NCBI GenBank assembly: GCA_004431415.1
Contig: QPMI01000273.1
Location: 13,965-77,964, forward strand
Length of the DNA: 64,000 nucleotides
Direction of reading: 5' to 3'
From: Cyanophora paradoxa CCMP329
Taxonomy: Eukaryota > Plantae > Glaucophyta
A program made the translations under genes and the position numbers. The notes under the pieces are model-generated. The model was not told the DNA's origin. It saw nothing but the letters and a program-made list of their open reading frames with translations, and did not search any database. Below, in pieces: positions 7,915-59,779 of this stretch; position 1 is the first letter of the stretch, and the number at the start of each line of letters is the position of its first letter.

Positions 7915-8174
7915 CGCCCCCCGCCCCCTCGCCGCCCCCGCACTCTGTCAACCACACCGCGACCTCGCCACGAGCGCGCCGGGCGTTGGGAGGGGTGCCG
8001 GGGTGCCCGCGGCCTGCTGGGGGGACCATCGCTAGCCGCCTCGCCTCGCCTCGCCCGGAGTCGCGCCCCGCGCGCGCGGCTACCTTCGTATCACCGACGG
8101 ATCCCGATGCCTGTGCACGGATCCGGAGCAGAGCGACGACGTCAAGCGCTTGCACGTGTCAACAATATTCATAC

Positions 8175-8235
8175 GTATGGCTGCCACGGCAGCCTTGCTT
8201 ACAGCAAGCTAAGCACAACATGTCTTGTCATGAAG
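8175..8235 (-). repeat. Split direct repeat B2 (element 3' end)
   Basis: Identical to 11995-12055. Confidence 0.95.
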
Positions 8236-8643
8236 TGAAGGTCTAGATTCGCGCTTGCCAAAGCCGCGAAGCTAAGATCATGACTCGCTCGCTCACAAGA
8301 AGGGCAAGCTGCAACTGCGCTCGAGGACATCAGCTAGCGCACGCTGCAGAGTGAGTCTTGCGGACGTAGAATGATTGAACATTAGTGATCAATTGTTGAT
8401 CAATTATTCATCAAAAGATATCAATGGTTGGCACTAACAATGGCTTAAAGATGACTGAAGGCATAGTAAACAATGGGCATTGCTAACACACATTGAAAGC
8501 GGCTAAGCAAAGCCGCTCGAGCGGCTAGGGAACAAGCCGCTCAGCAAGTTACACAGCTTGCCCTCGCTTGTGAGCGAGGGAGACAAGCGCCGACAGCACA
8601 GCAAAGGCGCACAACTGCGAAGCAAGACTCTAAGACTAGACAA

Positions 8644-9645
8644 TCAACTACTGCGCCGAGTACGCGCGACTTGCTGCCGACATGACTGCAGCGAAGCTGA
8701 CGGGCCAGCGTAACGAGCACCAGGCCTAGCCATGAGCGCAGCCAAGGGCGGGCGCTCAGCAGAATCGATATAGCGTCGGTAGACCGCTGACAACAAAGAC
8801 CAGCGACCAACCGCTTGAACAAGCTCTTCAGGCACGCCCGCAGCAGCCAGAGCAGTAGCTCCACCGCGACGCAAGCCATGAGGTGTGATACCAGTGGCGT
8901 CCAAGCCCGCCGCGTCAAATGCGAACCGGAGAACATAGGCCACGGTCTGAGCTGACAGAGAACGAGCTGCGTCCCGAAGCTGCCCAAAAAGAGGTGCGCC
9001 CGGATCCGCGAGCGCTAGAGTCCGCAAGTAGGTTCGAAACCAGAACACCGGACAGATGACCGACTCTGGGACGGCGCCCAAGACAACTTGCGCGCCTTGG
9101 CGACGACGATCGGTCTTGGAACCGGCAATGAAGAGCACGACGCGATCCGCGCGGATGGACACATCTTGCCGCCGGAGTGCCACGATTTCGCCACGCCGCA
9201 ACAGGCCAAAGAAACCGGTAAGCAACATCACAAGGGCGCGAAGGAGCTTGTTTGAGGGGGAACGAGCGTAGGTACGAGCAATCGCCTCCAGGTGGACGGA
9301 CGTGACCAATGCAGATTGCTTTGCTGGTTTTCCACAAAGTCGGGCGATTCCTTGCAATGTTTGCAGCACAAGGGGGTGAGCAAATGCAGTAGTAAGCAAC
9401 ATCCTCTGCCTTGTCTGATGTAGCAGAGCAGAGTGACACTGGTCAATTGCTGAGAGACCGTACTCTTCATCAGCAAGAGCCACCAGCAGTGTTGCGACGC
9501 CAGAAGCTGTTGGTGGCCAGGCTGGAATGCAGTGAACCGCGCAATGGCCTTCATAGAGGACGACCCAGCGGGCGTAGAGGCTTTGGGTTCGCTCGCTCAC
9601 AGAGTTTGTTCTGTAGAAAGTGACCCGGTTGAGCAGATCAGCCAT
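8644..9645 (-). CDS. Tyrosine recombinase of the DIRS element
   Basis: GLLRRGE, SKTD, HGLRRGGAT and GRW...YRRY supply the R-K-H-R-W-Y catalytic set. Confidence 0.95.
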   Translation of the reverse strand: MADLLNRVTFYRTNSVSERTQSLYARWVVLYEGHCAVHCIPAWPPTASGVATLLVALADEEYGLSAIDQCHSALLHQTRQRMLLTTAFAHPLVLQTLQGIARLCGKPAKQSALVTSVHLEAIARTYARSPSNKLLRALVMLLTGFFGLLRRGEIVALRRQDVSIRADRVVLFIAGSKTDRRRQGAQVVLGAVPESVICPVFWFRTYLRTLALADPGAPLFGQLRDAARSLSAQTVAYVLRFAFDAAGLDATGITPHGLRRGGATALAAAGVPEELVQAVGRWSLLSAVYRRYIDSAERPPLAALMARPGARYAGPSASLQSCRQQVARTRRSS

Positions 9646-9800
9646 ACGAGCACCTGCATCACCAGAGTCAAGGGTATGTCAGACTACATTTCTTCTTCTT
9701 CTTTTTAAAGCCCCCACTCAAGCTTTCTATCCCTGTTGCTGGACAAAGTAAGCTGAGCAGAGATGAGCAGGAGTTGAATTCTGCAGCAAGAGCCTTCAAT

Positions 9801-11765
9801 CTACTCCCACGACACATAAAGAGCAACAAGAATCCAGGAAGGTAACTGTGCCGAGCGAGGCCCGCGATAGCACACGTCATATGCTGGGCCAAGCACCATT
9901 GCAGGTGCACGCAAGGCAAGCTGCAACTGTGGCCACCATGGAGCTGAGGGCCACTGAGGGACAATAAAAACTGCCGAGGCCCTACACTGGCGGACATGTG
10001 ACACAAGGTGCAAGAGAACATTTGGGTCCGGAAAGACGTAATTACGAGCACCACGCCAGGTTGCTGTAAAGCAATCATATCCTTCAGCATGTCGATCATT
10101 CAAATCAATGGAAAAGTATCGATTTAGGTGAGTGTTGGCTGATGAGGCCATACGATCAATATCAAAAGGTCCAAATGTCCGACTGACCATGGCAAAATAC
10201 CCAGGTTTCAAAGAGTAGTCGGCGGGGTAAAAGTAGCGACTCAAAGCATCGGACCACTCATTGTCAACACCAGGAATGTGTTCTGCTTCAATGCTGATGC
10301 AATTGAGCAGAGCAATATCCCAAATTGCTGCTGCAACTCGGCAAAGGTATTCATGTCTTCCGCCACCATTGTTGATGTAGGCCACAGTCACTGTGTTGTC
10401 CGAGCGAACTAAGATGTTCTGATTGCGCAATAAACCTTGATAGTGCTGCATAGCGCGAAGCACTGCCATTAACTCGCGCCACGACGAAATTTGCTGAGCT
10501 TCTTCTTGGTTCCACAGGCACTGGAATGGGGCAGGCTCAAGCTCCCAAGCCACAGGTTGAGCATCACCAATTCGGGTAGTGATCCAGGCTCCTGCACCAA
10601 CATGGCTTGCATCCGTAGTCAACACAAAGAGCCTTTCAGGCCGAATAGGGCAGCGGCCATTGTATCGGTGGATGTTGGCCAGCCACCACTCAAGTTCCCG
10701 ACGAGTCTCATTGGTGAGCTCCACTGGATGATTCCAATGCCATTCTCTTGCCACGACATTGATGTATCGAAAGAGGGACCTGGTCTTGATGCGAGCTGGA
10801 GCCAAGCCCCGTGCCATGGACACAAGGGTGCCGGCGACCTTGGCCATTTCACGTGCAGATGCTGATTTCTTTTTCTTCAGAAGCCCTTTGATCAAAGCAA
10901 GCAGACGACCAAGCTTGTCTTGGGGTACTTCAAACAACATGCGGGCGGAGTCCACTATGAAGCCCAAGAAAGCCACCGACTGTGCTGGGGTGAGCTCAGA
11001 TTTGCTGTTGACCACAAGCTTGAGGGCAGCAAATGTTTTGAGGACGAAATCCCGCAATTCACAGGCCTTCTCGTAGGTTGGAGCAGCAAACCACCAGTCG
11101 TCAACATAGTTCACCACGAAGATGCCAAAGCGGCGGAAGTAGTTGACCACTTGTCGCATGATCTTGACGAATGCAAACGGTGAGTGCTTGAGGCCGAAGG
11201 GCAAAACTGTGTACACATAGAATTTGCTGTCAAACTCAAAGCCCATGTTCCGCCAGTCTTGCGGTGAGACTGGCACGTGGTGGTATCCAGATTCAAGGTC
11301 AATAGTGAACATGTACCAGCCTTGGCGCAGCATGGCTGCAACATGCTCAAGAGTCTCATACTTGAAGGGGATGTCCGGAAGGCCTTTATTGGTAGGCCGG
11401 CCATCCCAGATGAGCCGCAACTTGGATCCAGTCTTCTTGGGCACCACGGACAGTGAGCAGACAATGTTCACTTGAGCTTCTTCAACTTCTCTGATCGCTC
11501 CCGTGCGCAAAAGCTTCTGAATTTCGGTTCTCACAAAGTCCTGATGGTCCACAGCCGCAGACTTGTGGTTGGCCCGGCGCTCTGCTGGCAGCCGCCTCGC
11601 TCCTGACAAAGGGAAACCACGCAAGATCCAGTTGAGCACGACATCATTGGCTCCAATCGCTCTCCACTGTTGGACTGCAGCTTGAATGCAGGATGCAACA
11701 AAGCCTCCTGCAAAGTGAGGTGAGGCCTTGCATTGGCAGACATGCCCAATTATCGCGGTGCCCAT
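9801..11765 (-). CDS. DIRS pol: reverse transcriptase, RNase H and N6-adenine-methyltransferase-like domain
   Basis: IDLESGYHH, LPFGL, YVDD (RT); TTDAS, WRELMA, SDNTVTVAYIN, SDALSR (RNase H); FGPFDIDRMAS...YVFPDP...VPQWPSAPWW (DIRS MT). Confidence 0.95.
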   Translation of the reverse strand: MGTAIIGHVCQCKASPHFAGGFVASCIQAAVQQWRAIGANDVVLNWILRGFPLSGARRLPAERRANHKSAAVDHQDFVRTEIQKLLRTGAIREVEEAQVNIVCSLSVVPKKTGSKLRLIWDGRPTNKGLPDIPFKYETLEHVAAMLRQGWYMFTIDLESGYHHVPVSPQDWRNMGFEFDSKFYVYTVLPFGLKHSPFAFVKIMRQVVNYFRRFGIFVVNYVDDWWFAAPTYEKACELRDFVLKTFAALKLVVNSKSELTPAQSVAFLGFIVDSARMLFEVPQDKLGRLLALIKGLLKKKKSASAREMAKVAGTLVSMARGLAPARIKTRSLFRYINVVAREWHWNHPVELTNETRRELEWWLANIHRYNGRCPIRPERLFVLTTDASHVGAGAWITTRIGDAQPVAWELEPAPFQCLWNQEEAQQISSWRELMAVLRAMQHYQGLLRNQNILVRSDNTVTVAYINNGGGRHEYLCRVAAAIWDIALLNCISIEAEHIPGVDNEWSDALSRYFYPADYSLKPGYFAMVSRTFGPFDIDRMASSANTHLNRYFSIDLNDRHAEGYDCFTATWRGARNYVFPDPNVLLHLVSHVRQCRASAVFIVPQWPSAPWWPQLQLALRAPAMVLGPAYDVCYRGPRSAQLPSWILVALYVSWE

Positions 11766-11833
11766 CTAGCACTGCTACAGCTGATGGTCCATGCAGCCGC
11801 TGGCTTGAAGATGGTGACACGCGAACGGGAAGA

Positions 11834-12055
11834 AGCTTAGAGGCCTTGGCTGCGAAGCAAGACTGAGGCTTGTACCCCAGGGGCGCACTTATAACTTGTA
11901 AGTGCGCCCCTTGTACATATGTGCGTAAGCAAGGCTGCCTTTATTTGGCAGCCATACACTGCCCTATGCTACGCTGACGCTCACATAGGTTCGAGTATGG
12001 CTGCCACGGCAGCCTTGCTTACAGCAAGCTAAGCACAACATGTCTTGTCATGAAG
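11834..12055 (-). repeat. Internal B1-A2 junction (A2 11834-11994, B1 11995-12055)
   Basis: Exact abutting copies of both element termini. Confidence 0.95.
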
Positions 12056-12693
12056 AATATAAGAGTGAGCGTGTCAATGTGCTTGTTGGTTCAAGTCTTG
12101 AGCTCACATGCACACACAGTGCCACAATGCACCCACAGTGCCACAACACATTTGCACAGGCATGGACTTTCTGGATGAATGCGCCAACCTGCGATATCAG
12201 CGGGAACAGTTGGCATCATGGAATCTTCGTACCCTTGTGTACTCCTCACCTGCAAAATGCACTAGGTTAATTTCAGAGCGCCCAGTATGCGATAGCGACA
12301 CACGGGAAGGCCGGAGGGGGCCAGGAGCTCGACAGCCAGCAGCACTCCTGACCTGTGCTGGAAACAGGTCAGTTGCCGGGAGTCAGCTGGGGCTCTGCCA
12401 GGTTGGAGTCATCCAGACGGCAATATATGCCACTAGCATTGAAAAGAAAAGTAGACTACAATCACAGTCACACTTCACAGTGTTAACACATGCAAATGCA
12501 CACAGGACCAATGCATAAAGCCACAGCACGCCGGCGCCACCACGGCTGGTAATGACTATGCCGCACCCGGCCACAATGCCGCACCCGGCCACATGTACAC
12601 CATCACATGAAATGGAAGCATAATACATGTATTGCATGTTTAGGGAAGCATACACGCACACTCTAGATCTTCTGAAGACTGCACTTGCATATG

Positions 12694-13875
12694 CTAGCAA
12701 TACTTATGCTTGCAAGAACACACCGAAACACTAGTATCTAGCGAAATGCGAAACGAAAACTGCGCGTCCACACAAGGGCGCGCACGTCTACTTGGGGGGT
12801 CGCGCCAGCCGGGGCGCGGCTCGTTCGGGCAATCCTTCACGACATGCCCGGGCTTGTTGCAGCGGAAACACATCCCGCTGTTGCGCTGCGACGGCGGGCG
12901 ATCGCGGCCCTGGTGCTGGGGCCGCGGGTTGGCGTGCTGCACATACGGGCGCCCGCCGGCGGCCTCCGGGCCAGCAATGTTGAGCGCGTGCGCCAGCGCC
13001 GCAGCCGTGCCCCGATACTCCTCTGGCACACCTGCCAGCCGCTCGGCAAGCTTGTCGCCGCCCTTGTCGCGAATGTCGATCCGCTTCCGGAGCTCGTCGA
13101 GGATTTTGAGGCTCTGCTTTACGTGATCGTAGCACGCAGTGCACGAAGAGCATCTCTTGAGCTGAAACTTAAGCTGCGATAGCTGCAGGGCAAGCTCACG
13201 AAGCCACGGGTTTTTGAGCTGCATAGCCTCATGGTTGTCTTTCTGCTGCTCGCCGAGCTGCTGCTGCTGCTGCTCTTGAAGCTTGATGACCGCGCTATCT
13301 ATCCCACGCTGAAGTAGCTCAGCCCACGCTGGCGGAAGCGCACCCGCTGCCGGTTTGGTCGACGTTGGGGCAGTCGAGTTGCCAGCGGGTACAGCATAAG
13401 GGCCTTGAAGGTGACGGGTGAAGCCGGTTGACGGGCCAGCCGCGCCCGGATCCACTTGCGCCAAGTTCGGAAAGTTGCGCGCAGCCACTTGCTCTTCCTC
13501 GTCGTAGGCGCCACCGAACTGCTCACGCTGTGCCAGTCTAACGGCAACGTCGTCCTCAGGTTCATCTTCTGGGTCGGACTGCTGCTGGTCCGGATCCGGC
13601 GACACGGCTTTCTCCTTGCCTTTGCGAGATCGCGTCGGCGGAGGTGCAGGCTGCTCCTCCTCCGCACTGTCGTTGGCCGGAGCTTGAAGACGAGATGACG
13701 ACCTCCGGGCCTGGGGCGCGGGGGTCGTCGCCGTCTTGGGTTTGGCCGACTTGCGCGCACCAGTGGCCGTTGACTTGCGTTTCTGCGCCGCCTCGGCACA
13801 GGCGACGAGCAGAATGATGGTCAAGACGACTACGAACAGAGGGGCCCACGATGGGCTCCTCCGCGAGCGAGCCAT
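12694..13875 (-). CDS. Gag-like protein with CCHC zinc knuckle
   Basis: CFRCNKPGHVVKDC knuckle; Q-rich, possibly coiled-coil middle; ATG 7 nt after repeat A1; the true stop may be 12788 if a G-run is miscalled. Confidence 0.85.
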   Translation of the reverse strand: MARSRRSPSWAPLFVVVLTIILLVACAEAAQKRKSTATGARKSAKPKTATTPAPQARRSSSRLQAPANDSAEEEQPAPPPTRSRKGKEKAVSPDPDQQQSDPEDEPEDDVAVRLAQREQFGGAYDEEEQVAARNFPNLAQVDPGAAGPSTGFTRHLQGPYAVPAGNSTAPTSTKPAAGALPPAWAELLQRGIDSAVIKLQEQQQQQLGEQQKDNHEAMQLKNPWLRELALQLSQLKFQLKRCSSCTACYDHVKQSLKILDELRKRIDIRDKGGDKLAERLAGVPEEYRGTAAALAHALNIAGPEAAGGRPYVQHANPRPQHQGRDRPPSQRNSGMCFRCNKPGHVVKDCPNEPRPGWRDPPSRRARPCVDAQFSFRISLDTSVSVCSCKHKYC

Positions 13876-13881
13876 GACCTC

Positions 13882-14042
13882 AGCTTAGAGGCCTTGGCTG
13901 CGAAGCAAGACTGAGGCTTGTACCCCAGGGGCGCACTTATAACTTGTAAGTGCGCCCCTTGTACATATGTGCGTAAGCAAGGCTGCCTTTATTTGGCAGC
14001 CATACACTGCCCTATGCTACGCTGACGCTCACATAGGTTCGA
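13882..14042 (-). repeat. Split direct repeat A1 (element 5' end; probable promoter)
   Basis: Identical to 11834-11994; contains a TATAA-bearing hairpin about 65 nt upstream of the gag ATG. Confidence 0.95.
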
Positions 14043-14852
14043 ATAAAATGGCGGTTCGCTTAATCACCTGTTTTTCTATATATCGTGTCTAGATCTGAAG
14101 CTTCGAACTCGATCGAGCAGCAATTTGCAAGGCCTAGGCCCTAGGGACGGACGAAATGGGTACGAAATGGGAGGATATCGATCGGGAGTTTGAGAATCGG
14201 AGGATCAGGAGACAGCGGATCCGGGGTCGCATCCGGGGGGCAGTGGCCGAGTCGGTTAGCCTAGTAGAGCACGGGAGACTCCGGGGAGAGCCTCGAAGAG
14301 GCCCGCGCCGCGGCCCGCGCGGCTTATCAACCCCAAAGCATTTTTTTCGAGCTCACATGCGGCGACCATTCACGCATTTTCCGATTCATACGACGGCGGG
14401 TACGTGCTAGCTTGCGCATGCCGATCCGATCCGCTCAAACGCTAGCTACCGGATCATGAGATCTAGCTAGAGATCTTTTGCACGTGTCTAGATCTGCAGG
14501 TGACTGCAGCTGCAGCCGGCCTGGCAGCTACAGGCTACTTCTGAAGCCGCAATCGGGATCGGGATCGGCGAGTCGGGAGACTCGGGACTCGGGACTCGCT
14601 GCCGATCGCAGCAGATCGAGATGGGAGCTCGAGGACATGGGATGCGTGCGCTCCTGGGTGTGCTCGCCGCGTACTCCGTGCTGCTGGCCATGGTCGTTGT
14701 CACACACGCATCGCCCGACAAGCTTAAGCACGGTGCGAGCCGCGCGCAACTGCCGTTACCGTACTGCAGCTGCGTTCGCTATCGCTCATGATCTTGCGCA
14801 GAGAAGCAGCACAGCGCGATCAGCGCACCGGAGCAGAGAAGCAGCTACGAAC

Positions 14853-33990: not shown

Positions 33991-34216
33991 TCCGAATTCG
34001 AAGTTCTGGCCCACGGCCTGCAGCTGGTACGTATACGTATACGTCCGGTGATCGAATTTGATCGCTCCCCTCCCCTCGTCTTTTGCATCTAATTGAGTGC
34101 TCCTCGAGCTCCCTCTATCGCGATCTCCTCCTTCCTGCTACCAAGTTAATTCGAATTTAGCTTCTCCGGATCCTCGACCTCGGGCTATAGCTACCCTAGT
34201 AGTAGTAATTCGACCC

Positions 34217-34431
34217 AACTTCCGTTTCTTTTCGCGAGCTCGAGGGCGGTGACATCCACTGCGCATGCTTGTAGTGGACCATATGCATGCACGTGCACAG
34301 GTCATGCACATACTTTAGATCAACTCATGATCAGATAAAAGTCCATAATTATATTTATTGCATCTCACTACGTATACAAGCAGTGGATGTCACCGCCCTA
34401 GGCCTCGAGCTCGCGAAAAGAAACGGAAGTT
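34217..34431. repeat. Fold-back inverted repeat (arms about 34217-34276 and 34366-34431)
   Basis: Arms are reverse complements apart from three 6-bp insertions. Confidence 0.9.
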
Positions 34432-35065
34432 AGGAGACTTGACACCAGAGGCCGCTTCCAAAGCACCGTCACCTTCGAATTCGCGGCAAATATTACCTAC
34501 AGGAAGAAAGTTTAAACGGCGAGCTCCGAGGCGTCGCCCCAGCATCGATACCCAGGACCCCCCCGTGGCCACTTATGCGACTAGCGAGCCCGAGCCCGAG
34601 CGCCAGCGCTCAGCGGCTCTCCTGTAGGTAATACTAGCGCTAGCCACGTCGGCCACCTCAAGCCCGTCCCCTATAGCCCGAGCCTGAGCCCCTCTTCTTC
34701 TCCTTAAGCTTCTCCGATCCGAGCTCGTCGAGTGCAGCCGCGGGGCAGGCCGGGCCGGGGGCCCTACCCCGTCCCCGAGCCCATCGGCCGAGCCCCCTCC
34801 CCCTCCCCGAGCCCGTGAACCCCTCCCCTCCCCGAGCGCGTTGCAAGTTGGGCGGGGCCGACCCCACCCCCACCGGTACCCCCCCCCCCCGTCCGGATCC
34901 CTCACGAACGAGAGTTCCTCTTAATTATTTATAATTATAAGCTTGAAGCCTTGAACTTCGACTCGGCGATCGCGCGATCTGCGCCTCGGGGCCGGCGCCG
35001 CGGCGGCGCGAGCCCCGGGCCGGCAGAACATCACGCGGATCCGATGATCGGCGTGGCGGGCGGCG

Positions 35066-35213
35066 GGACTCGTCCGGAAGTCGGAACTCGGGAGTCGGGA
35101 CTCGGGAGTCGGAACTCAGTGACTCGCGATCGGGACTCGGGAGTCGGGATCCGGAACTCGGGACTCGGGAGTCGGGACTCGGGACTCGGGAGTCGGGACT
35201 CGGGAGTCGGGAC
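35066..35213. repeat. Heptamer array (TCGGGA[C/G])n; related runs at about 14570-14597 and 59498-59556
   Basis: Directly visible. Confidence 0.85.
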
Positions 35214-35516
35214 CGTCGCCGGCCCGTCGGACGTGGCCGGCAGCCACTGGGCCAGTAGCAGTCGGAGGCTATACCTAGCCCACTGGGCCAGTACAGAGTA
35301 CGGAGTAATCATTTTGAATATCTACTCCCCCTGAAATCATTAAATGACCTGAAATTTAGGCTGCATGCGCAATTCATCAGGACAATTTTCTGCAAGCTTT
35401 TTTTTGCAGGTTCGACGGCCAGCCGCTGAGCTGCAGTCGCGATCGAATACTAGTATACCGGTAATACCGGACTCTACTGGCTAGTCACTCTACTAGTACT
35501 ACCGAGTAGTACCGAC

Positions 35517-35986
35517 TAGGGCTGGGTTCAGTCACTGTCAGTCAAAGTCAGAGGGTCTGACTGACCCGACTGAGTCACCAAATTGGCCGACTGAGGTTCT
35601 CTCAGTCCCATACAAAACCCTGTTGGGAGCGTGCCCCCCTGTGGGCTTTTTCCATCTGAAGCTCGACGTGGATCGATCTAAAAAGGATCTTCTGTCGTCT
35701 TACCTCCAGAAAAACAACGTAATCTGAACGAAACCGCCCGCGCTAACGAGGCTAACGGGGGCCGAATTCCTTTCACCAGTGTTCTGAAGCTTTGCTCGCC
35801 TAATCACTCCCTACTGCCCGCGCACTGTGCTTGGCAACTTCGATGGATCGCATCTGGATCATTTCCGGGTCATTTTCGTCTGTTTTTGCACGGTAGCCTG
35901 ACTGAACCTTGGGTTGACTGATTCAGTCACAGTCAGGGGCGCTGAGCGACTGGGTCAGGGGTGGAGCCTGACTGAACCCAGCACTA
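35517..35986. mobile_element. hAT-type non-autonomous element (470 bp)
   Basis: 18-bp TIR TAG[G/T]GCTGGGTTCAGTCA (1 mismatch); 8-bp TSD GTACCGAC at 35509-35516 and 35987-35994; subterminal TGACTGA/TCAGTCA repeats. Confidence 0.9.
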
Positions 35987-36797
35987 GTACCGACTCGCGA
36001 CGCTACGAGTTCTGGCTCTATGGCGCAGTTTCCGCCATACAAACTTTTTCCGAGTCAAGTCGATTGACTAAACTCGGCCGAGTTTTTAGACTGGGAACAC
36101 CTTCCAACTTCCAAGTCAAATTAGTACTGCGCTGGCCCAGTGGGACCGTCGAGGTCCCCGTACTAATTCGACTTGAAAATGCCAGTGTTTTCCGATTGGG
36201 CACGTGCCGGTATATTTCACATGCTATATAAAAGCTGCTGTTGGCAGTTACTAGCCGGCAGTTACTAGGACTGTACCAGGAGGCTACTAGAACCTACCAG
36301 GTAGCTCCGGCGCCTGCCAATCTGGAGTTTGGCCCCAGTTCGCCAGGAAACTCCGCCTAAGGCCCATAACTCGTAGCGCGAGTCGCGAGTCGCGAGTCGC
36401 GACTCAACGGCAGCCGCGGCGTCCGACGGTCCGGCCGGGTCCGCGTCGACGTCCGAGACGGTCCGACGTCGACTCGGCGAGTCGGCGAGTCGGTCCGAGT
36501 GGACCGAGTCGGTGACTGTCGGTCCGACGTCGACTCGGCGAGACGGTCCGCGTCGAGTCGCGCCGTCGACTCGACGCGCGGCGACGCGGGCGGCGGGCCC
36601 GGGCCGCGCGGCCGGGCCCGCGCGCCGCCCGGCGCCCGCGGCCGCCGGCCCGGCGGACCGGCGATCACTGTACGCCGCGGTACGCCGCGGGCCGCGGCGG
36701 CCGCGCCCGCCGATCGCGACGTATCGATATCGCGTACGCGTGCCCGTCGCGTGGCCCCAGCGGCGGCCAGCGCTAGCGCCGGGGAGTCAGCCGTCAC

Positions 36798-37087
36798 CCG
36801 TGTAGCACGAAATTACCGCGGCATAAATTATAATTAATTACCGCGTTATATAGACCCTGGCCTGAACGTGCACGTGGCCAAAATACCGCGGTACCAACTT
36901 TACCAAATTACCGCGTTATAAGATTTGGAGGCTTGTATGGGGCGGTAATTGTAGGGGGGGTACTGTATGGAGCAACGTAGCAGCAGGTTATTACCGTGGT
37001 ACCAAATTACCGCGGTACGTCACAATTTCGGCGCGCTAATTTTGTACCGCGGTAATTAAGTGAGCGCGGTATTATAGTGCCACACGG
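36798..37087. mobile_element. MITE-like element with many ATTACCGCG motifs
   Basis: 11-bp TIR CCGTGT[A/G]GCAC; repeated internal motifs in both orientations; TSD not clear. Confidence 0.5.
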
Positions 37088-37295
37088 TAGTAGTACGTTC
37101 TGTGAGACTCTGACTCGGAGCTCGAGTCTCGAGTTCCGATCGCGACTCCTAGCTATAGGCTACCGGTATAGCTCGAGCTCTGAGCCTCTGACTCCTCCGA
37201 GTCTAAAGAGTTACTGCTAATGGCCACTTTTCTCGATTGCAGTAAGCGATCGCTTCTGATTCGCCGTTTTCAGCAGTACCGACTACTACCGACTA

Positions 37296-37587
37296 GTACC
37301 GAGCACTCAGAGACTCTTTATAATTACAGAAGAACACAATATTAATGCGCTCAATATTAATGCTTTTTTGGACTCGGATCCGGCCGAATGAATGCGTTTT
37401 GAAGCTTTTCTGCTGCGATACTATGATGTGGGGTACATTATTATTATACCGTACATACAGCCGGCCGTTCTTATTCACGCGCCCCAAAATTAATGCGTTT
37501 TGACGGCGCGGAAAACGCATCGAATTGGGGATGCACTGCGCGCGCGGCATTAATATTATGCGTGCATTAATATTCTGTTATACGGTA
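37296..37587. mobile_element. TA-flanked (Tc1/mariner-like) MITE remnant; related copy begins at about 58479
   Basis: The reverse complement of the right end, TACCGTATAACAGAATATTAAT, resembles TACCGTAAAACAGAAAATTAAT at 58479; shared AACGCATTAATTT.GGGGC motif. Confidence 0.5.
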
Positions 37588-37610
37588 GCTCGTAGTTGTA
37601 CGGTACTATA

Positions 37611-37853
37611 CACAGCTCGTTTTTTTTAGCAGTCGACTCAACATGCCCGTTGCATGGGCAAGGGTAGCCGGCGATCGCGATAACTTTTCACCCGTCGCAG
37701 CACGGCTAGTCTCCTCGCAGAATGTTGTAGCCGGCAAGCTAGCGGGTAGAATGGTGCTAGCCCGGTCCCAGCCCAACCCAATACCCGAAGAGCGATTTCA
37801 CTTTAACCGGATTTCAGCCGTGTTGGGTCGACCGGTAAAAAAAACGAGCTGTG
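37611..37853. mobile_element. CACTA/EnSpm-like (CMC) MITE, 243 bp
   Basis: 33-bp TIR starting CACAG (3 mismatches); 3-bp TSD ATA at 37608-37610 and 37854-37856. Confidence 0.8.
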
Positions 37854-37986
37854 ATACGGTGTACTTCACCCACAAAAAACTGCCTGAGTCCACGCCGACT
37901 CCACGGTACCGGCCCGGCGGTAGTAACGGTGCTAGTACTACCGCGGTAAACGGTAATTTCCGATCTAGTATTTTTCTGTTACACGG

Positions 37987-38179
37987 CACTGTAGGCGTAG
38001 TTTTATTGCCGTGGAGTCAATTTGCCGAATTCGACCGAAACCGGAATTGCCGTGGCAATAAATTGCCGAATTATCCTGCCGAATTGGCAAAACCACGTAC
38101 CCCCATGCAATTGGCGTGGTGCTAGATTGCCGAATTCGGCTAAAAAAACGGCTAAAAAACTACGCCTACAGTACTAGTG
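37987..38179. mobile_element. CACTG-ended MITE with TTGCCGAATT internal repeats
   Basis: TIR CACTGTAGGCGTAGTTTT; the right TIR is interrupted by a 6-bp insertion (AGT-ACT-AGT, 38170-38178); TSD not clear. Confidence 0.65.
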
Positions 38180-38882
38180 CCGGTAAACGTTTATAACAAG
38201 AAATTTTTCTGGGCTTGCCAGCCACTGGGCCAGTTGGCCCAGCGGCCCCGGGCCCCAGCCTGGCAGTGGGATTTTTGGGAAACTCCAGCCTCCAGCCTGG
38301 CAGTCACCAGCTGGCAGACTACCGTGTAATACTTATTTACTGCGCCACAAATTACTGCGTTCCAAATTTGCTTTCATGCCTCATGCCTATCAGGGCATCT
38401 GCGAAATCATTGCCAATGATGCCATGATTCCCATGAAGGCCCATGGGCCATGGCCATGATATCGATATCCATGGCACCGGGCAGATCACTGAGTCAAGAG
38501 ATGCTGTAAATTGGCTTCAGCTTAATTAGCCCAAAATCTGAGATCAATTGCAAGGTCTGCAGGGCCAGTGCAGGCTGCACCTAGGCCTGTAAGGCTGTAA
38601 CACAGGCTGTAGTACGGTTGTACCGTCACGGCGTTGTACGCGTACTGTCACAGTGTAAGCGGTCTGTACTCCAGCTCGGCGGCATCAGAGCCTAGTCCGA
38701 CGGTCGCCGAGTCGACGCCGAGTCGCGATCGACGCCGAGTCGACGCCGACTTGACGAAGTTGACGCCCATCGCGAGTGCAGTGCACTGCAGCTCTAGATC
38801 TAGATCTGGCATGGGGCGCCGGCAGCCAGCTGCGCGCGAGGCTGCGAATCCTGCGATGGTCGACATATGCATGCACATATGC

Positions 38883-41800
38883 ATGGCTAGACCTCGAAGC
38901 CGTGTCTTCATCGCAAGTGCGCGAGGCATGCTCTTTAGGGGAGCAATTTTACAGAGGCTCGCGACCGCCTTGGTCGTGGCGGTCTGCGTTGTCGCGGCCG
39001 TCGATGCGGCCGCAGTCCCAACATGCGGTGCGTCCGCTGCGCGCCTGCCGCAGTGCATATATATACGGCGCATTTACAATCGCGTATTCTCGATTCCGAT
39101 CGCGCTCGAACATATATATGTGCGAATGAACGCGCTGCCGATCGTTAACGTCGCTGCAGGCGTTCGCTGGCCCAACATCGACAACATAGAGAACACGCGA
39201 GAACAGCCGCATTTCGTGCAAGTGAACCGCACCATTTATCTCTCAAACCCAATGACCGTAGGTCCGTTCCTCTCCCTCGCGCGGCCGCCCGCTGGCGCGC
39301 GCTTGTGATCGCGCGGCTATGTATATATAGCTACTAATCGGAAAGCGCGAACCACTTTTCCCGCAGAATTCTGGTGCGCGCATGCGCATATGCATGCCGC
39401 CGTTCTAGATTTGGATCTGCTCCTCTGAAAACTTCAACCGCGCGCACGCACGCGTAGGATGAAGGTTGCCGAGGCACCCTTTTCGGTCGCTTACACGGGG
39501 TGGTACTACCCAATCATGGACTTTGCCGTTCGGGACGGTGTAGGGAAACCTGTTGCGGATGCTCCCGAGCTGGGCTTCATGCTCTACTATTACTGGGTGC
39601 GGTCATAATTGTTGAGTCGACATCGATATCGATTTCGCGAGCATCTGTGCGCGCGCATGCGCACATGGTGAGTCTAAACCAGAGCCCATGCCAGGTTCCG
39701 GGCCCCTCCCGTGATGGCAGTGAACCTTCGGTGCGTCGAGCTCGCCCGCTGTCCTACACGACCGCACGTGTCCCGCCTTCTAAATTCACGAGCAGAAACT
39801 CGGCTTAGGACTGCGCTCGACCCACGGGGACACTACGGAACGCGATAATTCATACACCTGGGCAGCAGAGCTCGTATCCACCTACGCTGACGCCTTCCCC
39901 GTGCGCCCGCCGTCGTGCTATTCGTGATCGTGTCTGCGCATACGGGTACTAGGCAGCTCATGTTGCATCGCATATGATTGTGCATGTCATGCACAGGCCG
40001 ACGTTTGGACTCACGTGAGAGCGCATTGCGCATTCATGATTCACGGTTCCTGATTCGTGCAGCATACTCATCAATATCAATATATATCGACAGGTTGCAG
40101 TCGTCATCGGCAAGACGCAGGCGGGATCGGCCTATACGTATGTCAATAATGATCGAGTGCTTACAACGGGATTCGGGGCGAGTGTAACCGCGTACCTTAA
40201 CGCAAGCAAAGTCGCTTTTCCTGCCGATACGTGCGCTCTCATTTCGAATTCGACCTTTGAGTGTGAGCACCCGCGATCATTATCGTTTCTGAGACGATAT
40301 CAGCGATCCGAATGTGCAGGATCCTCGAGGAGGCCTATGGTATAAGGTAGGTCCATGTCTGATCATGATCATGAACAGCTGTTTATCATGATCATGAACA
40401 GCTGTTTAAACACTGTCTTCAAACTCGTCTTGCGCATGCGTATGCGCGCATGCATTCTAACTACAAATTAAATCGGTGCTAGGACGTAAATAAATTTGGA
40501 ACAGCCCCCGTGGAGCCGGTCGCCCGCGTCGTCAACTACTTTGGCCGGACTACTCAGGTAGCGATTGCGTGATACATGTACACAAACACACTCGTCTACA
40601 TGCAACTCTGAGTGCAGGTCGATGCGGGCGTGATAGATAGCTACATGATGCCTGGGGCGGACGATCTCGAGCTCGCCGAGTGAGCAGAGAGTCTTCGAGC
40701 GCGGCAATTGGCCGATGCATATATGCTCGCATACTGAAACATAAAAATCATAACCAACGTCGTCTGCAGGTTCCGCGTCTGGAACACGAGCCTTCCAGAA
40801 GCTGACATCAAAAGCATTTACGAGACCGGCATGAACTGCACGCTGTACCGAGCGTACCCCCTCACGATGTGGTTCAAATTCGACGACCCCCCGGTAATAT
40901 ATCATATTATATTATGCACACTTGATGCATCTGATCACCGGCGCAAAACCAGGGCACAACGACCTTCACTGACGCTTCCGAGAATCGTTTTCCTGCGACG
41001 CTTAATGCCTCAGTCGGGTTTCAGTGCCTAGGCCGACGCTACGAGTTCATCGGTCTCGAGTATTGCGCGGGGAAAGCGACGCCCACGCCTTCTCCAAGCA
41101 TGACGTGAGCCTTTGAATTCTGCGCTGCTGCCCTGCGCGACCGCGGGTGCCTCGAGCTCGCGTCTGACGCCGGCGCCGGCGGCGGTCGCAGGCCGAGCGC
41201 GACGCCCTCGCCGAGCGCGACCCCGTCGCTGACCCCGACGCCCTCGCCGACCGCGAGCCCCACGCCCTCCGCCACGCCGACGGCGTCGCCGACCCCGGCC
41301 CCCTTCTTCCTCGCGGCCCCCGCGGACCCCGCGCTCGTCACTGCCTTCGTCAACCGGTGCGCTGCAGTTGCGAGAATCGCGCATTCCTCGAAATCTGAGA
41401 TCGTGCAATCATTGAATATGCTGAAGTGAATTCTAGTACTAGCCGTGCTCCGCGAAATTAATCTCAATCCTCAAATCATGATCACGATCGCAGGCTTCAG
41501 ATTCGCTTATTCATTCCCGCCGGCACTCCCAACGTCCCTGATTACCTACCGACGAAGTGCGATATTTCAATCTGCTCCGAGGCTCAATGATCTACCTGTC
41601 AACTTCACATTCCTGTTATCTGTCAGATGCGAGCTGTTCCGCATCAATGGAAGCGGGGGCGGCGACATCCTCGCGGGAACCCTCAACCGCCCCCAGTCTC
41701 CAGCCGGCGTCTCCGCAGGAGGCCTCGCCGCCTACACGGACTACAGCTTTTACGCAGTTTGCTCGAACGCGTACGGCATGGGCGCAAAGTCTAAGCTTGT

Positions 41801-44800
41801 CACTTTCCGGAGTGCGCTGGCCTTCTTGAAATTAAACATGTACAGCTAGCTTGCTTCATGATCACATTAGCTATAGGTTGACAATTGCAATCTGCGCAGC
41901 CAGAGGACTCCTTGGAAAGGCGCCCTCGCCGGAACGGCTGGCGACCTCAATCGACTCCCGAAGCCGCGCGACCCTCACGCTGCGCATGTTTCCACCGAGC
42001 CCGTCTGGCGGCGGCTCTTTCAGCTGCGAGCTCATTGGTGGGCTGCCCCCTCCTGCGCACGGATTTCTGCAACACGCGCTTATTTTTCATTTAGAGCTGA
42101 ATTCGGGAGCGACCGCATTACAAGTAGATTCCAGCAGATTCTCGGCCGGATACTTTGATACATCCTTCATGCTTCTTGGATTGAGACCCATGCTGATTGG
42201 GTGAGCGCGAAGATAGTGTAGTATATATTCTTAATTGTCGGCACTCAAAGAACATGTACACTCACTGCTCTCCATTCCAGAAACACATACCGCTTCCGGA
42301 TGGATTGCTCGAACGACTTCGGTAGCGCTTCTGGCAACGAGTTGACCGCTGCAGTCACAAGTCTGTTCTTCGATCGCGATGTCTCGAGTTTCGAAGCACT
42401 CACCTCGAGCTCTGCCCGCACCGTCGCCCTCGACCTCAGACCAGCCGTCTCCGCGCGAAGCTCCGGAGACTGTGACGGCCTATGCCTACGCCTCCACGGC
42501 GACACTGGCCTTCTACCCAAAGGGGCTGAGGCTGACCTCCTGTCGGCTTATTGTCACCGACGTCGATGCAAGCAGTTCACAGGAGCTGAGATACCCTTCT
42601 TGTTTTGTCAACGTACAGTGCGTCCCTCCCCCTAGGCCTCACGGCGCTGATTTTAATTAAGTTTACTATATGCATATGCATATATATGCCCTCTCGTGTC
42701 GACGTCTGCGATTCTATCTTTAAGATTCGGAGCAACGCAGAAAGAACCAGGCCTGTTTTAGGTCATCCGATCAGGCCGGCACAACCTGGACTATGCTACA
42801 ATGGGATGTCAAAGGGCTGAAGATGGCTACGAAATATTCTTTTGCGTGCGTGGGCTTATCATAGTATTTGAACTCGTTTCACTTGATCTTACCCGCGCCG
42901 TCCTATATGTGCGCATTCAGAATTTCGTGTGCGGTGCGCGGCGCACCTGTAAATTTAAAGGCTCATTCGTCAATGTTTCCGCTTATTGCGATGCGCATGC
43001 CTGCTGACGGGGGCTTTAATAGAATGAAGTCGGCTTCTCTCCCGGTAGCTAAGCTGTTTTATTGCCGAATAAATAGAGACCCGGTCGCTGTCATAATCAG
43101 TGACTGTCTTCGTGCTCTGCTCGGATCCGGACAGTTGAGAACAAATGGATGACTTGCACGGATCAGCGATTTGTTCCGATGTCGAAGCGCTCTCCGCCGT
43201 TTTACTATGGCAACTGGGTCGGAGTCAATCCCGACACACTCCCCCCCTCAAAGTGCGGGCGGCAGCAGTTGTTCACGACGTACGGTGCGCGAGAATCTGC
43301 GGCCGCACGCGCCTTCCGGATCCGTCATGTTCTAATGCGTTATTCGTAATTTGGCAGGCCCCGAATACTTCAAACCGCCCTACGAGCTCAAGCTTCTGCA
43401 AGCGGAGGCACAGTTTGTGCAAATCGGATTCAAAATGGGGGTCCGTATACATTAATAATCACCTGCATTGCTTAGTATGTACGACTTCGATTGCAGTACC
43501 CTGGATGGTTCGAGGTGAACGAGAAATGTGAGATCACGATTTGTATACTTGAATACTTGATAGCGTTGAATGCGAGCCTTAAGATTTTATTGAATGGCCA
43601 TAGAGACGCCTCGCCATTGCGTCCTGATCGAGGGATTGATTTTTCTCGCAGACGGCTGGTGCAGGATTGAAGCAAACGGCAACTATGCAGGTGCGTATAC
43701 GTCCCTATCTCCAACCTTTCCGATAGAAAAAGTGAGGCACGTGATAGGCATTCTTCGGATCAACAACGATGTGGGAGACTTTTCGAACGAATACTTCAAC
43801 AGTAAGCAGAGTTTCTTGCTGCTACATATAAAATGGCGGTTTTTCACCCTTGCATGTGCACAGAACCCGTCACTGGGTCGAGCTGGAAGGTTAACATCCC
43901 TCCTCCTTGGTGCATTGCCGTCGAACGCTAAATCATGTACAATCGTCCCGAGTGTAGATTTCTACTATCCCAATTATCTTTGAGCTCCAACAAAACTCGG
44001 ACTACGGTGCGGGAATTCTTGTGTTTTGTCCAAAAATGATTTCATTGGGTCTCGATCGTCCAAACAGTGATCTCGATCTGGTGCGGACATGCACAAGGCG
44101 AGAGCCCGAAGGTCAACATCTCTGTTCGGACGAAGGCCTCTCGTAAGTTTCCTCCAGCCTTTTGCCAGCCCTCTCGATTTCAGCTTTTAATCATCCACCT
44201 ACATGCACTTTCGGCATGCGCGCACAGCTGTCCTTTTGTGCGTAATCTGTTTCCTCATGTTGGGCCTGCAGTATGACATGTGTACATGCCGCTCTGACCT
44301 CCGATCATCCTGCAGAGACACTTCGAACCCTCTGCTTGCCGGCATGTCTCAAGACTCCACAGGTGAACTTCTCAATTTAATGCAAAAGTCTGCCTTCGAC
44401 CCAATCTTCTCGTCTCGCAGGAGCCTTCAAAGCTGCTGAGCCTGCGTTGGCGCCTGCGGTAAGTTAAGTGGTGCCCCCGATGCATCAACCGCGATCTGCA
44501 TTGCTCAAAGTTCGACAACTCACTCAAAATGCAAACGTGAAACACAACGACATGCAGCCATGCAACATTACACTGTGCGCATGCGTGCAAATGAGCATGA
44601 ATGACTTTAAATTTATAAATACATGTACGAGAAATTTGACTGGAGTCTTTCAGCGAGGCGTTGCGAGAGAACAACTGCGTGTGTAAGCACTCTCCAGTAT
44701 TCTACGGAGTATTTATATGGCTCTCTGATTTATAATCATGCTCCATTCTAATTGTTTGCGCTTTAAAAGGTGACATCTGCTTGACGGTCGAGCAAGCAGT

Positions 44801-47794
44801 GCAAATCTTCGCTTACAAAAGTGCGTGTTATCCTTGCATTTGGGTTTGATTGTATGATCTATAGATGTTTCAAGATCTAACACTTCCGTGCTGCATCGTT
44901 GCACGCGTACGGCAGTGCCGTTCAAGCAAGTCCTCGGGCTGGCGAGGCGCGAGCTGCTGCAGTCCACCCCCGGATCCACCGCGAGCGTCAGCACGACGAA
45001 CTCCATCCGCCCCGCAACGGAAGGCTACGCACAGGACAGCACGTGCGAAACAATGGACGATAAACGGTACGCGCGAAGGGCTCCGAGCACGATTGTATTT
45101 AGTACCATCTATATATACACACGTGTTTATTCACCTGCTCGCAATCGTTTACCCGCGGTCGTTCGAGCAGGAAAGGAATGGATGGGAATCAAATTCGTGT
45201 CTGCGTTGTTCGGTACATTATATATTTCATCGATATCCGAACTATAGCTACGAATTTGAAGCTCGGGCTCGTCACAAGATATTAAACGTTGCTGCTGATG
45301 CATGCTCGTGTGCGCAGGGAAGCCCCTTCCCGCAGGGCGCTGCTTGCGACCGGGGGGACAATCGTGTCGGTGGACAGCACTTACATCTTCGCCGACAAGA
45401 ACAAGCAGGTGGACTCGACGGGCGCCGTCACAGTTAGCATGCCGGTCAGCTGTGTTTAATTTGTTCGTGCGATCGCGACCGTGCCCGCAAGAGCTGCTGT
45501 TCGTGACGTTGCCTCCGTACGCGCGCGCCAGGCCTCGATGCCGGACGTCAACTACGGGGCGGCCGCTGCCGGCGGGTCGAGCACGCGGCGCGGGCGCCTG
45601 CTCCTGCAGCTGGCCGCCCAGGGCGTGCCCCTGTTCCCCATGAACGCCGGCCTCGGCGTGGCGCTGCAGGTGCGCACGCGCACGCCGTTCAACCGCGCAC
45701 GCCCGCCGCGTCCCGCGGCCGCCGCGTACCGCCCGCGCGGGAGATCGTTTCTTGACTATACGCGGTGCGATTCCGCATGTACAACCATGCCAGGACACGA
45801 AGACAGGCGCGACGATGGTTCTTAACAATGTGCGTTTGTTTTCAATTTTGCATCGGAATTCGAAGCTTATATTAATAATTTATATAAGCACTATCTAGTA
45901 CAAATAGTAGCATATATTTATAATACGCATGTTCTGATTCGAATGTACGTGCTTACCGGAATCGGCAGGCGGTGTCCTTCCCCGCGCCCGACCCCGCGAT
46001 GAGCACACCCGGATCGCCGCAAGTGCAGTCTGTGACCTTCAGATCCGTGCTGGTTCGAATTCGTGTTTTTATTTCCGCAAGCGCTCTCAAGGCGACCTTA
46101 TCTGAAGATTTGAGTGCCTTGCAGCTTCGTTTCACGAGCTCCGATAGTCAAGCGGTTGATCTAAAAACTCTGAAGGTGCATCCTGGCTCGCTGGAATTTT
46201 GACTGAAGCGCTCGTGTTAATCTATCCTGCTGACACTCTCGCTCGCTCAAAGGCACTACCGGTTCAAAAGGCACGCGTAATTATGTTGCTCAAAATCAAA
46301 ACCTTGAATTCAATGACGGCGATTAATTATAAATTTAAAATGCTTAAGCCTTAGAGATAGTTTGTCACAACGCGATTCATGCTCATCGTCTCCGCGCACA
46401 GTGTGGCGTGTACTCGACGTCAAACGACAAGGAAGGTGGGCTGTTGATCATGATGTTGCATGCAGCCAGCTGCAGCTGCGGCTGCGGCCGCGGGGCCATT
46501 TGTGAACGGCACTTTGCGCGCGCGCGCAGTCGCTGCGGTCCTCAACCCGCAGCCCCTCACGCAGCTCGAAGTGTTACTCGACAAGCTCGCTTCAAGCACG
46601 TTCTTCGAATACTACACAAAGGTCTCTCCTGTGTTTCGACCGCTAGCGCTGATAATCAGCGCGCAAGTGATCGCAATGTTCGTGCATGATCATCGATGCA
46701 GTGCGAGAACAAGTACGGCTCCTCGTCCACGTCTGCCCCAACAGGCGTCACCACGCGAGGTTCTTCGCTTGCGTCGGCACGGGCGCTCACTTGGAGTTTA
46801 TTTATATGCGTGCTGCAGCGTTGACAGCGGCGCCTGCACTGGACAAAATCGCAAACTTCACTGCCGACGGAACTTTCCGCATGGTGGCTCCATGGCGTAT
46901 CCGCTCTGCCGATCGCCAAGTCAACGTGCGCCAATAACGACATTGACACGATTATATCATAATCGGGAATTACAATTGGCCGCGTTGCCGGCGTTAATAT
47001 TGTCCAGAAATCTTATGATACTTCTTTTCTCAGGCTACGATTCGGATCAACGGAACGTATGCGGAAGTCCCGCAGGTCAGTCTAGATCTACAGTTGCAAC
47101 GCTCAGTCGCTGAGTATACGTGCAAGGACCGGCTGTAGTCAAATGCTGAATGCAATCGTGGTCGTGGTCGCCGGCCTTTGAACCGCGCGCGCAGGTGGAT
47201 CTCGGGTTCTTCAACGGGGACGGCACCCCGAAAGCCGGCTCGTTCGCGTACCCCCTCGCGGTCGTCGTGGACCCCGCCCCCTCCGTGAACGAGACGGAAG
47301 GCACTTCGGTTGTCGGCTCTGAAATCATCATATGTGCGAACAGTTTCTTGCTTGGAGTTTCTTGCACATCGATTAGTATTCTGGGATCGCACCTCATGAT
47401 CGCGCGATGGCGCAGACGTCCCTCTGGACCCGCCGGCGTCCCCCTCCCAGCGTCGCAACCGTCAGATTCTCTCCCCGAGCTCCACTTTCGACCTCCGGTT
47501 CCGGACGTCGGACGGCGGATACGTGCTTAGCAACGTGCGCCACCGACGCCCCCAATCCCTCCCCTCTTTGCACCGTGACTAGAAATCGACACTGTCGGTT
47601 TGAACCCGGCAGGCCGTGTCGTACAGTCAAGACCTGCGGGGAGTTGTCGTGCCGAGCCTCACGTCCGCCGCCTCCCCGGCAGTGGCGCGCGCTCCAAGCT
47701 GGGCCTCCTGCCTGGCCTCCAGCTGCTCAATGCTGCTGGCGCTGGCTGCATCTGTACTGCTGGCCTATTAGTGCAAGTACACGTAGCGGCATGA
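38883..47794 (+). CDS. Large secreted or cell-surface protein with FN3-like repeats, a P/S/T linker and a Cys-rich C-terminus, many introns; boundaries and single-gene status uncertain
   Basis: Signal-like LATALVVAVCVVAAVDA-A; PSATPSPSATPSLTPTPSPT linker (about 41194-41300); FN3-like YTDYSFYAVCSNAYG and TYRFRMDCSNDFG; RRELLQ; Cys-rich block then a hydrophobic tail. Confidence 0.5.
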
Positions 47795-47922
47795 TCTCGA
47801 TCTTGTGATCGTGCATTCTGTGATTTCGTGTTTCGGATTAATAAACTTAATAAACTCGAACAGCATGCTTTGCTCCAAATTAAACACCATGCATATGGCA
47901 CCCAGTCGTCATGCATACAGCC

Positions 47923-51686: not shown

Positions 51687-52086
51687 ATAAGACAAGTACT
51701 GTGCTCTAAATCTGCGCTCCGCTCGCGATCGGTCTGACGGTCTATCTGTCTTGCAGAAATTAATATCTCAGGAGCTGGAGTCTATAGCTAGTTTCAGGAA
51801 GCGACGTGCCCCGCGGCCGGGGCCTCCGAGGTTCGCCGAGTCGCCGCCGACTCGCCGGGCGTTGCAATTACCAATCGCAACTTCCCGGAGTCCGCGATCG
51901 GATCGATATCGCGAAGCCGCTGATACAATCATGATCAATCATGAGTCAGTGTCGAGTCACTGTCGACTCAGCGATGGCGCTCCGGCTGCAGCTGCTGCTC
52001 CGTATACGTGTCGTTAGTGATTCGTCACTGTCCGCAACTATCATAGTATATACGTATACTATGATACAGCAATCGTTATCGAGCTT

Positions 52087-53967: not shown

Positions 53968-53971
53968 CCCC

Positions 53972-54700
53972 CCGGCGGCGTCACGGCGTGCCCGGCGCCG
54001 CCCTTCGCCGGCCCCCTCGCCGCCGCCCTCGCGATCGCGACTCGGCGATCGCCGCTGCCCTCGGGGCCCGCGGCCGCCTCGAGTTTCGATGCGAGGCAAC
54101 GGCATTTTGTTTTTGAAGTCGACTTTATATCTAGTTGTTTGGTAGGAAGGCGACGTTCAATTTGGCAGAAAAAGGCATTTTGTTTTTGCAGAAGTGGACG
54201 TCGACGCTACTTTAATTCCCTGCCAGCCGTAGCCAGCCCCTCAAGCCCAGCCCGTGATAAACTCCGGATCCGGTCCTCGCATCGATATCGATATCCCTCA
54301 CGAGCCCCCCGTTTCCGATAAGACAAGTACTGTGCTCTAAATCTGCGCTCCGCTCGCGATCGGTCTGACGGTCTATCTGTCTTGCAGAAATTAATATCTC
54401 AGGAGCTGGAGTCTATAGCTAGTTTCAGGAAGCGACGTGCCCCGCGGCCGGGGCCTCCGAGGTTCGCCGAGTCGCCGCCGACTCGCCGGGCGTTGCAATT
54501 ACCAATCGCAACTTCCCGGAGTCCGCGATCGGATCGATATCGCGAAGCCGCTGATACAATCATGATCAATCATGAGTCAGTGTCGAGTCACTGTCGACTC
54601 AGCGATGGCGCTCCGGCTGCAGCTGCTGCTCCGTATACGTGTCGTTAGTGATTCGTCACTGTCCGCAACTATCATAGTATATACGTATACTATGATACAG
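53972..54700 (+). repeat. 729-bp duplicate of 51341-52069
   Basis: Apparently identical sequence ending TACTATGATACAG in both copies. Confidence 0.95.
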
Positions 54701-54729
54701 ATATATACTAGGATATTCGAGCTTTTTCG

Positions 54730-59609: not shown

Positions 59610-59746
59610 AAAAATGCACAAAATGGATACCCGGCCCCGCCGGGCGCGCCGCGGCGCGCGGCGGGCCCGAGGGCGAGGGGACGAGGGCGGCCGCTCCGGG
59701 GGGGATCCACTGGGCCAATCTCCGAGGCTCTCCAGTGCGAGGCCGC

Positions 59747-59779
<33 letters not shown>

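Follow-up and report, generated by a model that had tools for sequence, protein, structure and literature searches.

Background

Retrotransposons that carry a tyrosine recombinase (YR) gene and are bounded by split direct repeats (A1...B1A2...B2) are, to our knowledge, poorly understood, and we know of no experimental test of the model proposed for their replication. A methyltransferase-like (MT) domain following RNase H is carried by both DIRS and PAT and separates the two from Ngaro. In the described elements the internal B1A2 junction lies either between MT and YR (nematode Pat1 and kangaroo; PMC4157794) or after YR (the echinoderm form of Pat1, Ngaro and VIPER; PMC4157794, PMC6681497), with Ngaro and VIPER having no methyltransferase-like region and the order B1-A2-B2 downstream of YR (PMC6681497, PMC9210276). 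The position of the junction varies among PAT elements, and translocation of the internal repeat has been treated as a recurrent change (PMC4157794). Here we describe an element at 8175..14042 on the - strand of a 64,000-nt stretch of the genome of the glaucophyte Cyanophora paradoxa CCMP329 (contig QPMI01000273.1, positions 13,965 to 77,964; the whole stretch is referred to below as the window), in which B1 and A2 meet between gag and pol. We consider it probable that this is an intact copy of a young, multi-copy PAT-like YR retrotransposon of DIRS order, with its B1|A2 junction in the gag-pol spacer.

An internal junction between gag and pol

Read on the - strand from 14042 to 8175, the order is A1-gag-B1|A2-pol-YR-B2, where pol comprises reverse transcriptase (RT), RNase H and a putative MT-like region. 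The 5' terminal repeat A1 (13882..14042, 161 nt; this and the other repeats come from a repeat search) is followed by gag (12694..13875, 393 aa in the window copy, taken from the list of open reading frames, ORFs), a 638-nt non-coding spacer (12056..12693) and B1 (11995..12055, 61 nt), the internal copy of the 3' terminal repeat. The internal copy of the 5' repeat, A2 (11834..11994), adjoins B1 with no spacer, which places the junction at 11995/11994, and a 68-nt leader (11766..11833) runs from A2 to the pol ATG. The pol ORF (9801..11765, 654 aa) and the YR ORF (8644..9645, 333 aa) are 155 nt apart, and a further non-coding spacer of 408 nt (8236..8643) leads to the 3' terminal repeat B2 (8175..8235, 61 nt). 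The first-pass annotation had read the locus as two cassettes, [A-gag-B][A-pol-YR-B], with identical repeats, an extent of 8175-14042 and the gag and pol ATGs at 7 and about 69 nt past a copy of A. Both the repeat search and the reading of the - strand bear this out: the element measures 5868 bp, and the ATGs lie 7 nt past A1 and 69 nt past A2.

The two copies of A agree at 161/161 positions and those of B at 61/61. Neither repeat has a third copy in the window, and shuffles give an expectation of 0 copies. The search itself reported A as 11834-11997 and 13882-14045, the three additional nucleotides being a chance extension (TAT versus TAC). Within A, AATAAA is found at nt 50, in the loop of a first hairpin, and a second, perfect hairpin contains TATAA at nt 102, 59 nt from the 3' end of the repeat; B contains TGTAA.

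Domain searches identified a CCHC zinc knuckle in gag, RVT_1 (1.3e-18) and RT_RNaseH (1.9e-5) in pol together with a YVDD motif and a weak Dam-like methyltransferase region at the C-terminus, and Phage_integrase (3.9e-12) in the YR ORF, whose Arg, His-x-x-Arg and Tyr motifs read LRRGE, HGLRRG and VYRRY. The N-terminus of gag (13786-13875, - strand) is hydrophobic and signal-peptide-like, and it is identical across all aligned C. paradoxa gene models. At position 12793 the window copy is 1 nt short relative to all four runs compared, so that its frame is shifted past the zinc knuckle and its gag has 393 aa against the 362 aa of other copies, which end in ...WRDPPK. No family match to a protease or to an rve/DDE integrase was found among the element ORFs in the Pfam domain search. 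A long terminal repeat retrotransposon was considered and ruled out, as there is no protease, DDE integrase or target duplication and the repeats are split direct ones.

With the PAT-like group, represented by nematode Pat1, Volvox kangaroo and Toc3, the element shares a zinc-knuckle gag, an RT-RNase H module, a tyrosine recombinase, the lack of a protease and DDE integrase, split direct repeats in the order A1...B1A2...B2, and the lack of a target duplication; the methyltransferase-like region that follows RNase H in that group has a putative, weakly matching counterpart here. It differs from them in the position of the junction, which in the described forms is between MT and YR or after YR, in the 928 nt that keep gag and pol from adjoining or overlapping, and in its host, and it extends PAT-like elements to glaucophytes. 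Ngaro and VIPER likewise have split direct repeats and a tyrosine recombinase; unlike in Ngaro, however, the junction precedes pol, and pol has its weak Dam-like match. A junction between gag and pol is, judged by sequence against the literature and the relatives described below, a third position for the internal junction, and it gives an already known kind of element a new layout. We found no account of this arrangement, the known positions being taken from PMC4157794 and PMC6681497 rather than from the original descriptions of PAT, kangaroo and Ngaro.

Copies and insertion sites

The element is young and multi-copy. Its gag family comprises at least 18 near-identical C. paradoxa gene models (tig..._g..., EukProt) on at least 10 contigs, about 100% identical wherever they align; another gag family, 47% identical, has 6 models (C. 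paradoxa proteome, P0059-P0078). In some of the gag models an in-frame intron of 141 nt is predicted (13760-13620), or 51 nt are missing. In 14 DNA sequencing runs from one organism, 0.95-0.96 of the element's words are present. Contigs of DNA run X1 lead without a branch across the boundary between pol and A2 (10629-11863), and likewise across that between the 3' untranslated region (UTR) of gag and B1 (12026-12687). Taking contig depth as the rough measure that it is, the unique parts of the element stand at ~2100-2700 and A at ~4740, with gag at ~2075-2300 compared to ~2370-2700 for pol-YR. These depths indicate that A is present twice per unit, that gag and pol-YR are about equal in number, and that the layout is typical of most copies.

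A local rearrangement of a canonical element, or an assembly artefact, affecting this copy only would be a highly improbable explanation of the layout. No differences separate the repeat copies, none of the three ORFs is disrupted, and in contigs from independent DNA runs pol continues into A, and the gag 3' UTR into B, with no loss of depth relative to the unique parts, in agreement with the view that the arrangement is not a one-off.

The same depths bear on a bolder proposal of the first-pass annotation, in which the two cassettes are separate replicating or integrating units of a segmented element. The recombinase might, for example, resolve a circular intermediate into one gag circle of 2.05 kb and one pol-YR circle of 3.82 kb, either of which could integrate by itself. 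Each cassette does have complete A and B ends, and the junction presumed in the circle would be the same as the internal one. Excision by tyrosine recombinases between sites in direct repeat is established for Cre and FLP. Segmentation is logically possible, since any circular intermediate would hold two identical direct B|A sites, and with these recombination-type sites kilobases apart, resolution of circles would be detectable by polymerase chain reaction. However, with A about twofold deeper than the unique parts, and with gag and pol-YR at similar depths, there is no visible surplus of either cassette (within the limits of so rough a measure), no solo cassette was seen, the gag cassette has no enzymes and the pol-YR cassette no gag. 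Independent movement of the cassettes was thus not upheld, and we regard it as quite unlikely. The fuller version, a truly bipartite element in which A drives two mRNAs and the recombinase splits the intermediate into gag and pol-YR units that integrate and persist alone, seems to us similarly doubtful; if true, it would amount to a two-segment retrotransposon.

The window copy has no target-site duplication, its 5' flank being ...TTTAT and its 3' flank GTATG..., while another copy, seen in contigs of the sequencing runs, is flanked by ...TTTAT and ACTAG...; several different flanks abut the same two element ends in such contigs. In several independent insertions A1 is preceded by ...T(T)TAT and B2 is followed by GTA (in the window, 14043-14047 and 8171-8174). 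This suggests a short preferred target that is palindromic with the ATAC end of the element.

Junction position among relatives

Seven relatives (L001 to L007) were compared on the basis of pol. The closest, L001, is 79% identical in pol, and its contig holds pol only. In L002 (51%) and L004 (47%), what precedes pol-YR is not a gag ORF but a non-coding leader, whose length is at least 138 nt in the former and at least 264 nt in the latter; both leaders are hairpin-rich and AT-rich, with TATA-like AT boxes just 5' of pol. The four more distant relatives share with the window element the gene order and membership of a clade of 13, with pol 31-39% identical. Of these, L003 (39%) has a 531-aa gag-like ORF that stops 4 nt before pol, whereas the other three, read from long ENA contigs, share the split direct repeats of the window element and differ from it in where the junction lies. 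L005:4964-10088 and L006:4971-10083 (both 33%) are organized as A1-gag-pol-YR-B1A2-spacer-B2, with the junction after YR, and L007:5054-10867 (31%) as A1-gag-pol-B1A2-YR-B2, with the junction between pol and YR; the last ORF of L007 is homologous to the recombinase ORF of L005 (E = 4e-32). A scan of metagenomes found nothing closer than 31% identity, and split repeats were absent from the short contigs that it returned.

In a quick maximum-likelihood tree the window element groups with L001 and then with L002 and L004 at a support of 100. This group is separate from L003 and from the clade of L005, L006 and L007, all of them falling within the supported clade of 13. Two different junction positions are therefore present inside one well-supported clade (L005/L006 versus L007). 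As far as these sequences can be read, the junction occupies different intergenic spacers in different lineages, and it is in the clade of the window element that pol is preceded by a leader. The expectation that known split-repeat elements have their junction after RT fits both the published forms (PMC4157794) and L005, L006 and L007. Because the position of the junction is known to vary (PMC4157794), we treat its site as a variant feature rather than one that defines a family. The gag-pol position shows that the internal junction can sit in any intergenic spacer.

Several points weigh against our interpretation of the element or reduce its reach. The 1992 description of PAT reportedly may put gag between its repeats, and this would make the layout less novel. 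The last 154 residues of pol match Dam (PF05869) at E = 7.5e-4 and 19.7 bits, below the Pfam cut-off of 28.1, with several homologues having precomputed PF05869 matches. Exact look-ups with the window pol and a full-length gag model returned no contig and no second full copy, and the layout is extended to most copies by way of contig depth. The tree is a quick search of database proteins and includes no named PAT, DIRS or Ngaro references. Finally, no sense transcript, transcript start or poly(A) site is apparent among the RNA-run contigs, and those that can be oriented by their splice sites are all antisense.

Expression of gag and pol

The gag stop codon is separated from the pol ATG by 928 nt that contain 23 ATGs. 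Since scanning from a full-length RNA cannot reach pol across such a distance, pol-YR would need an mRNA of its own. Any activity of A1 is also possible for A2, as the two are identical, and promoter activity of A2 would be the simplest source of a pol-YR mRNA, a suggestion based on sequence that we put forward tentatively and hold at slightly under even confidence. The first-pass annotation had gone further, seeing in A a reused promoter that gives separate gag and pol/YR mRNAs. Sense mRNAs of this kind did not emerge from the data, where the sole RNA that can be oriented by splicing is antisense and spliced.

Alternatively, the element may be a single transcription unit in which A2 is no promoter and the site of the junction is a neutral accident. 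Expression of pol-YR would then depend either on splicing to a subgenomic RNA, the main competitor of an A2-driven mRNA, or on initiation within the full-length RNA. The predicted 141-nt in-frame gap of the published gag models, which has GT..AG ends on the sense strand, speaks for such splicing. We nevertheless think this unlikely: a promoter in A1 would be present in A2 as well, L002 and L004 likewise have AT-rich, TATA-like leaders directly before pol, and no sense splice from the 5' end to pol is found among the joints listed (15 of 20). If pol-YR does have its own mRNA, a junction between gag and pol would force the two genes onto different mRNAs, and the element would offer a clean system for asking whether the terminal repeats are promoters.

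An antisense spliced RNA

RNA data were available as contigs only, from six runs guessed to be RNA, each of which contains 0.62-0.66 of the element's words. In three of the six, which belong to three studies, contigs aligned over pol-YR show at least 15 skips of 50-171 nt; there are none in DNA run X1. The 15 introns listed, whose joints come from these three probable RNA runs, span 8994..11796 on the + strand. In order, these are 8994-9055, 9218-9271, 9376-9431, 9587-9636 and 9674-9770, followed by 9842-9904, 10008-10059, 10128-10204, 10347-10517 and 10714-10773, and then by 10828-10880, 10990-11076, 11180-11256, 11503-11560 and 11720-11796. On the + strand every one of the 15 has GT..AG ends, the donors resembling G|GTRAG and the acceptors being mostly CAG, and none can be read as CT..AC. 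It follows that the RNA runs antisense to both pol and YR.

The + strand of pol-YR has eight GGTRAG motifs, seven of which serve as donors, and the antisense strand of gag, which has no GTRAG, is covered by unspliced contigs (12120-13911). On the antisense strand of pol, GGTRAG occurs 6 times versus 1.0 expected under synonymous shuffling (P < 0.003), a motif that was picked after the donors had been seen. The same excess was found in 0/6 relatives, and in L001 (79% identical) 13/19 of the antisense splice dinucleotides are kept against a baseline near 50%, which is not significant. A protein-coding antisense gene was considered and rejected, the longest open stretch of the spliced + strand being 204 codons, which does not exceed the lengths obtained with frame-perturbed introns (P = 0.36); the + strand ORFs gave no match to a Pfam family.

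Antisense transcription seems to cross the whole element and to splice into its flank. The RNA contigs leave the element into flanks unlike those of the window, indicating that the expressed copy is located elsewhere and that the RNA probably starts outside the element. Two details of these contigs were noted separately. Those of the gag region carry 39-70 other letters before 12120, a position preceded by AG on the + strand, and one RNA contig exits A at 11897 (11897/11898), where GT comes next on the + strand, into letters from outside the element.

Genes of C. paradoxa have a mean of 9.2 introns, 86 bp each (PMC6704402). With so intron-rich a host, the likeliest origin of the antisense RNA is read-through into a copy lying in antisense orientation, followed by ordinary splicing at the sites available; an RNA encoded by the element itself seems less likely. 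If so, this RNA with its at least 15 introns illustrates what the splicing machinery of such a host does to read-through transcripts of a transposon. The pol and YR of this family are absent from the published C. paradoxa proteome, in which gag is present, and this may reflect RNA-guided gene prediction misled by the antisense RNA, with which the pattern fits.

The junction palindrome and a proposed model of replication

B ends in ~30 nt that repeat nt 37-71 of A in inverted orientation, so that B1|A2 is the centre of a palindrome of ~100 nt (11925..12022, assigned to no strand; defined by its arms and by DNA folding). Measured from the inverted repeat within A2, the end of B2 is 3784 nt away. 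The arms match at 15/15 and 19/23 positions. Folded as single-stranded DNA, the B|A junction reaches -63.1 kcal/mol (z = -8.1), and 0/200 shuffles fold as well. The palindrome is likely to be a template or a recombination site from which the ends of the element are rebuilt. This recalls DIRS-1 of Dictyostelium, where termini absent from the RNA are rebuilt from a copy of the joined ends inside the element; in the window element the junction is itself palindromic, with the end of B repeated inverted within A. It differs from DIRS1-like elements in that the terminal repeats are direct and not inverted, the ~30-nt copy of the B end in A being the only inverted one.

One contig of an RNA run, X15, has the B end joined to an A from which 68 nt are gone (11923-11990, equivalent to 13971-14038). 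The missing piece consists of the first hairpin and a spacer and is flanked by short direct matches, AC.TATGT. The join could be either a junction deletion variant or a template jump.

We suggest the following course of replication for a PAT-like element with its junction between gag and pol. A promoter in A, for which the TATAA at nt 102 is a candidate, would start sense RNAs in A1 and probably also in A2. The full-length sense RNA, reading through B1A2, would be packaged and reverse-transcribed as in the published split-repeat model. The internal B|A palindrome would then template or align the joining of B2 to A1, supplying the terminal sequence that the RNA lacks, a step that would account for the observed identity of the repeat copies. 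The recombinase would integrate the B2-A1 junction without a duplication, as the flanks of the window copy indicate, and might favour ...TAT|GTA... targets, which are seen in several flanks. In such a model the position of the junction would be free, as long as it falls within non-coding sequence.

Neighbouring sequence

ORFs flanking the element gave no informative domain. Large ORFs at 52149-54116 and 54839-56482 had no Pfam match. Two parts of the window, 34000-48000 and 52000-60000, contain long stretches of 50-60% G+C in a genome of 65-79% G+C and in this resemble the element; they may represent further mobile DNA.

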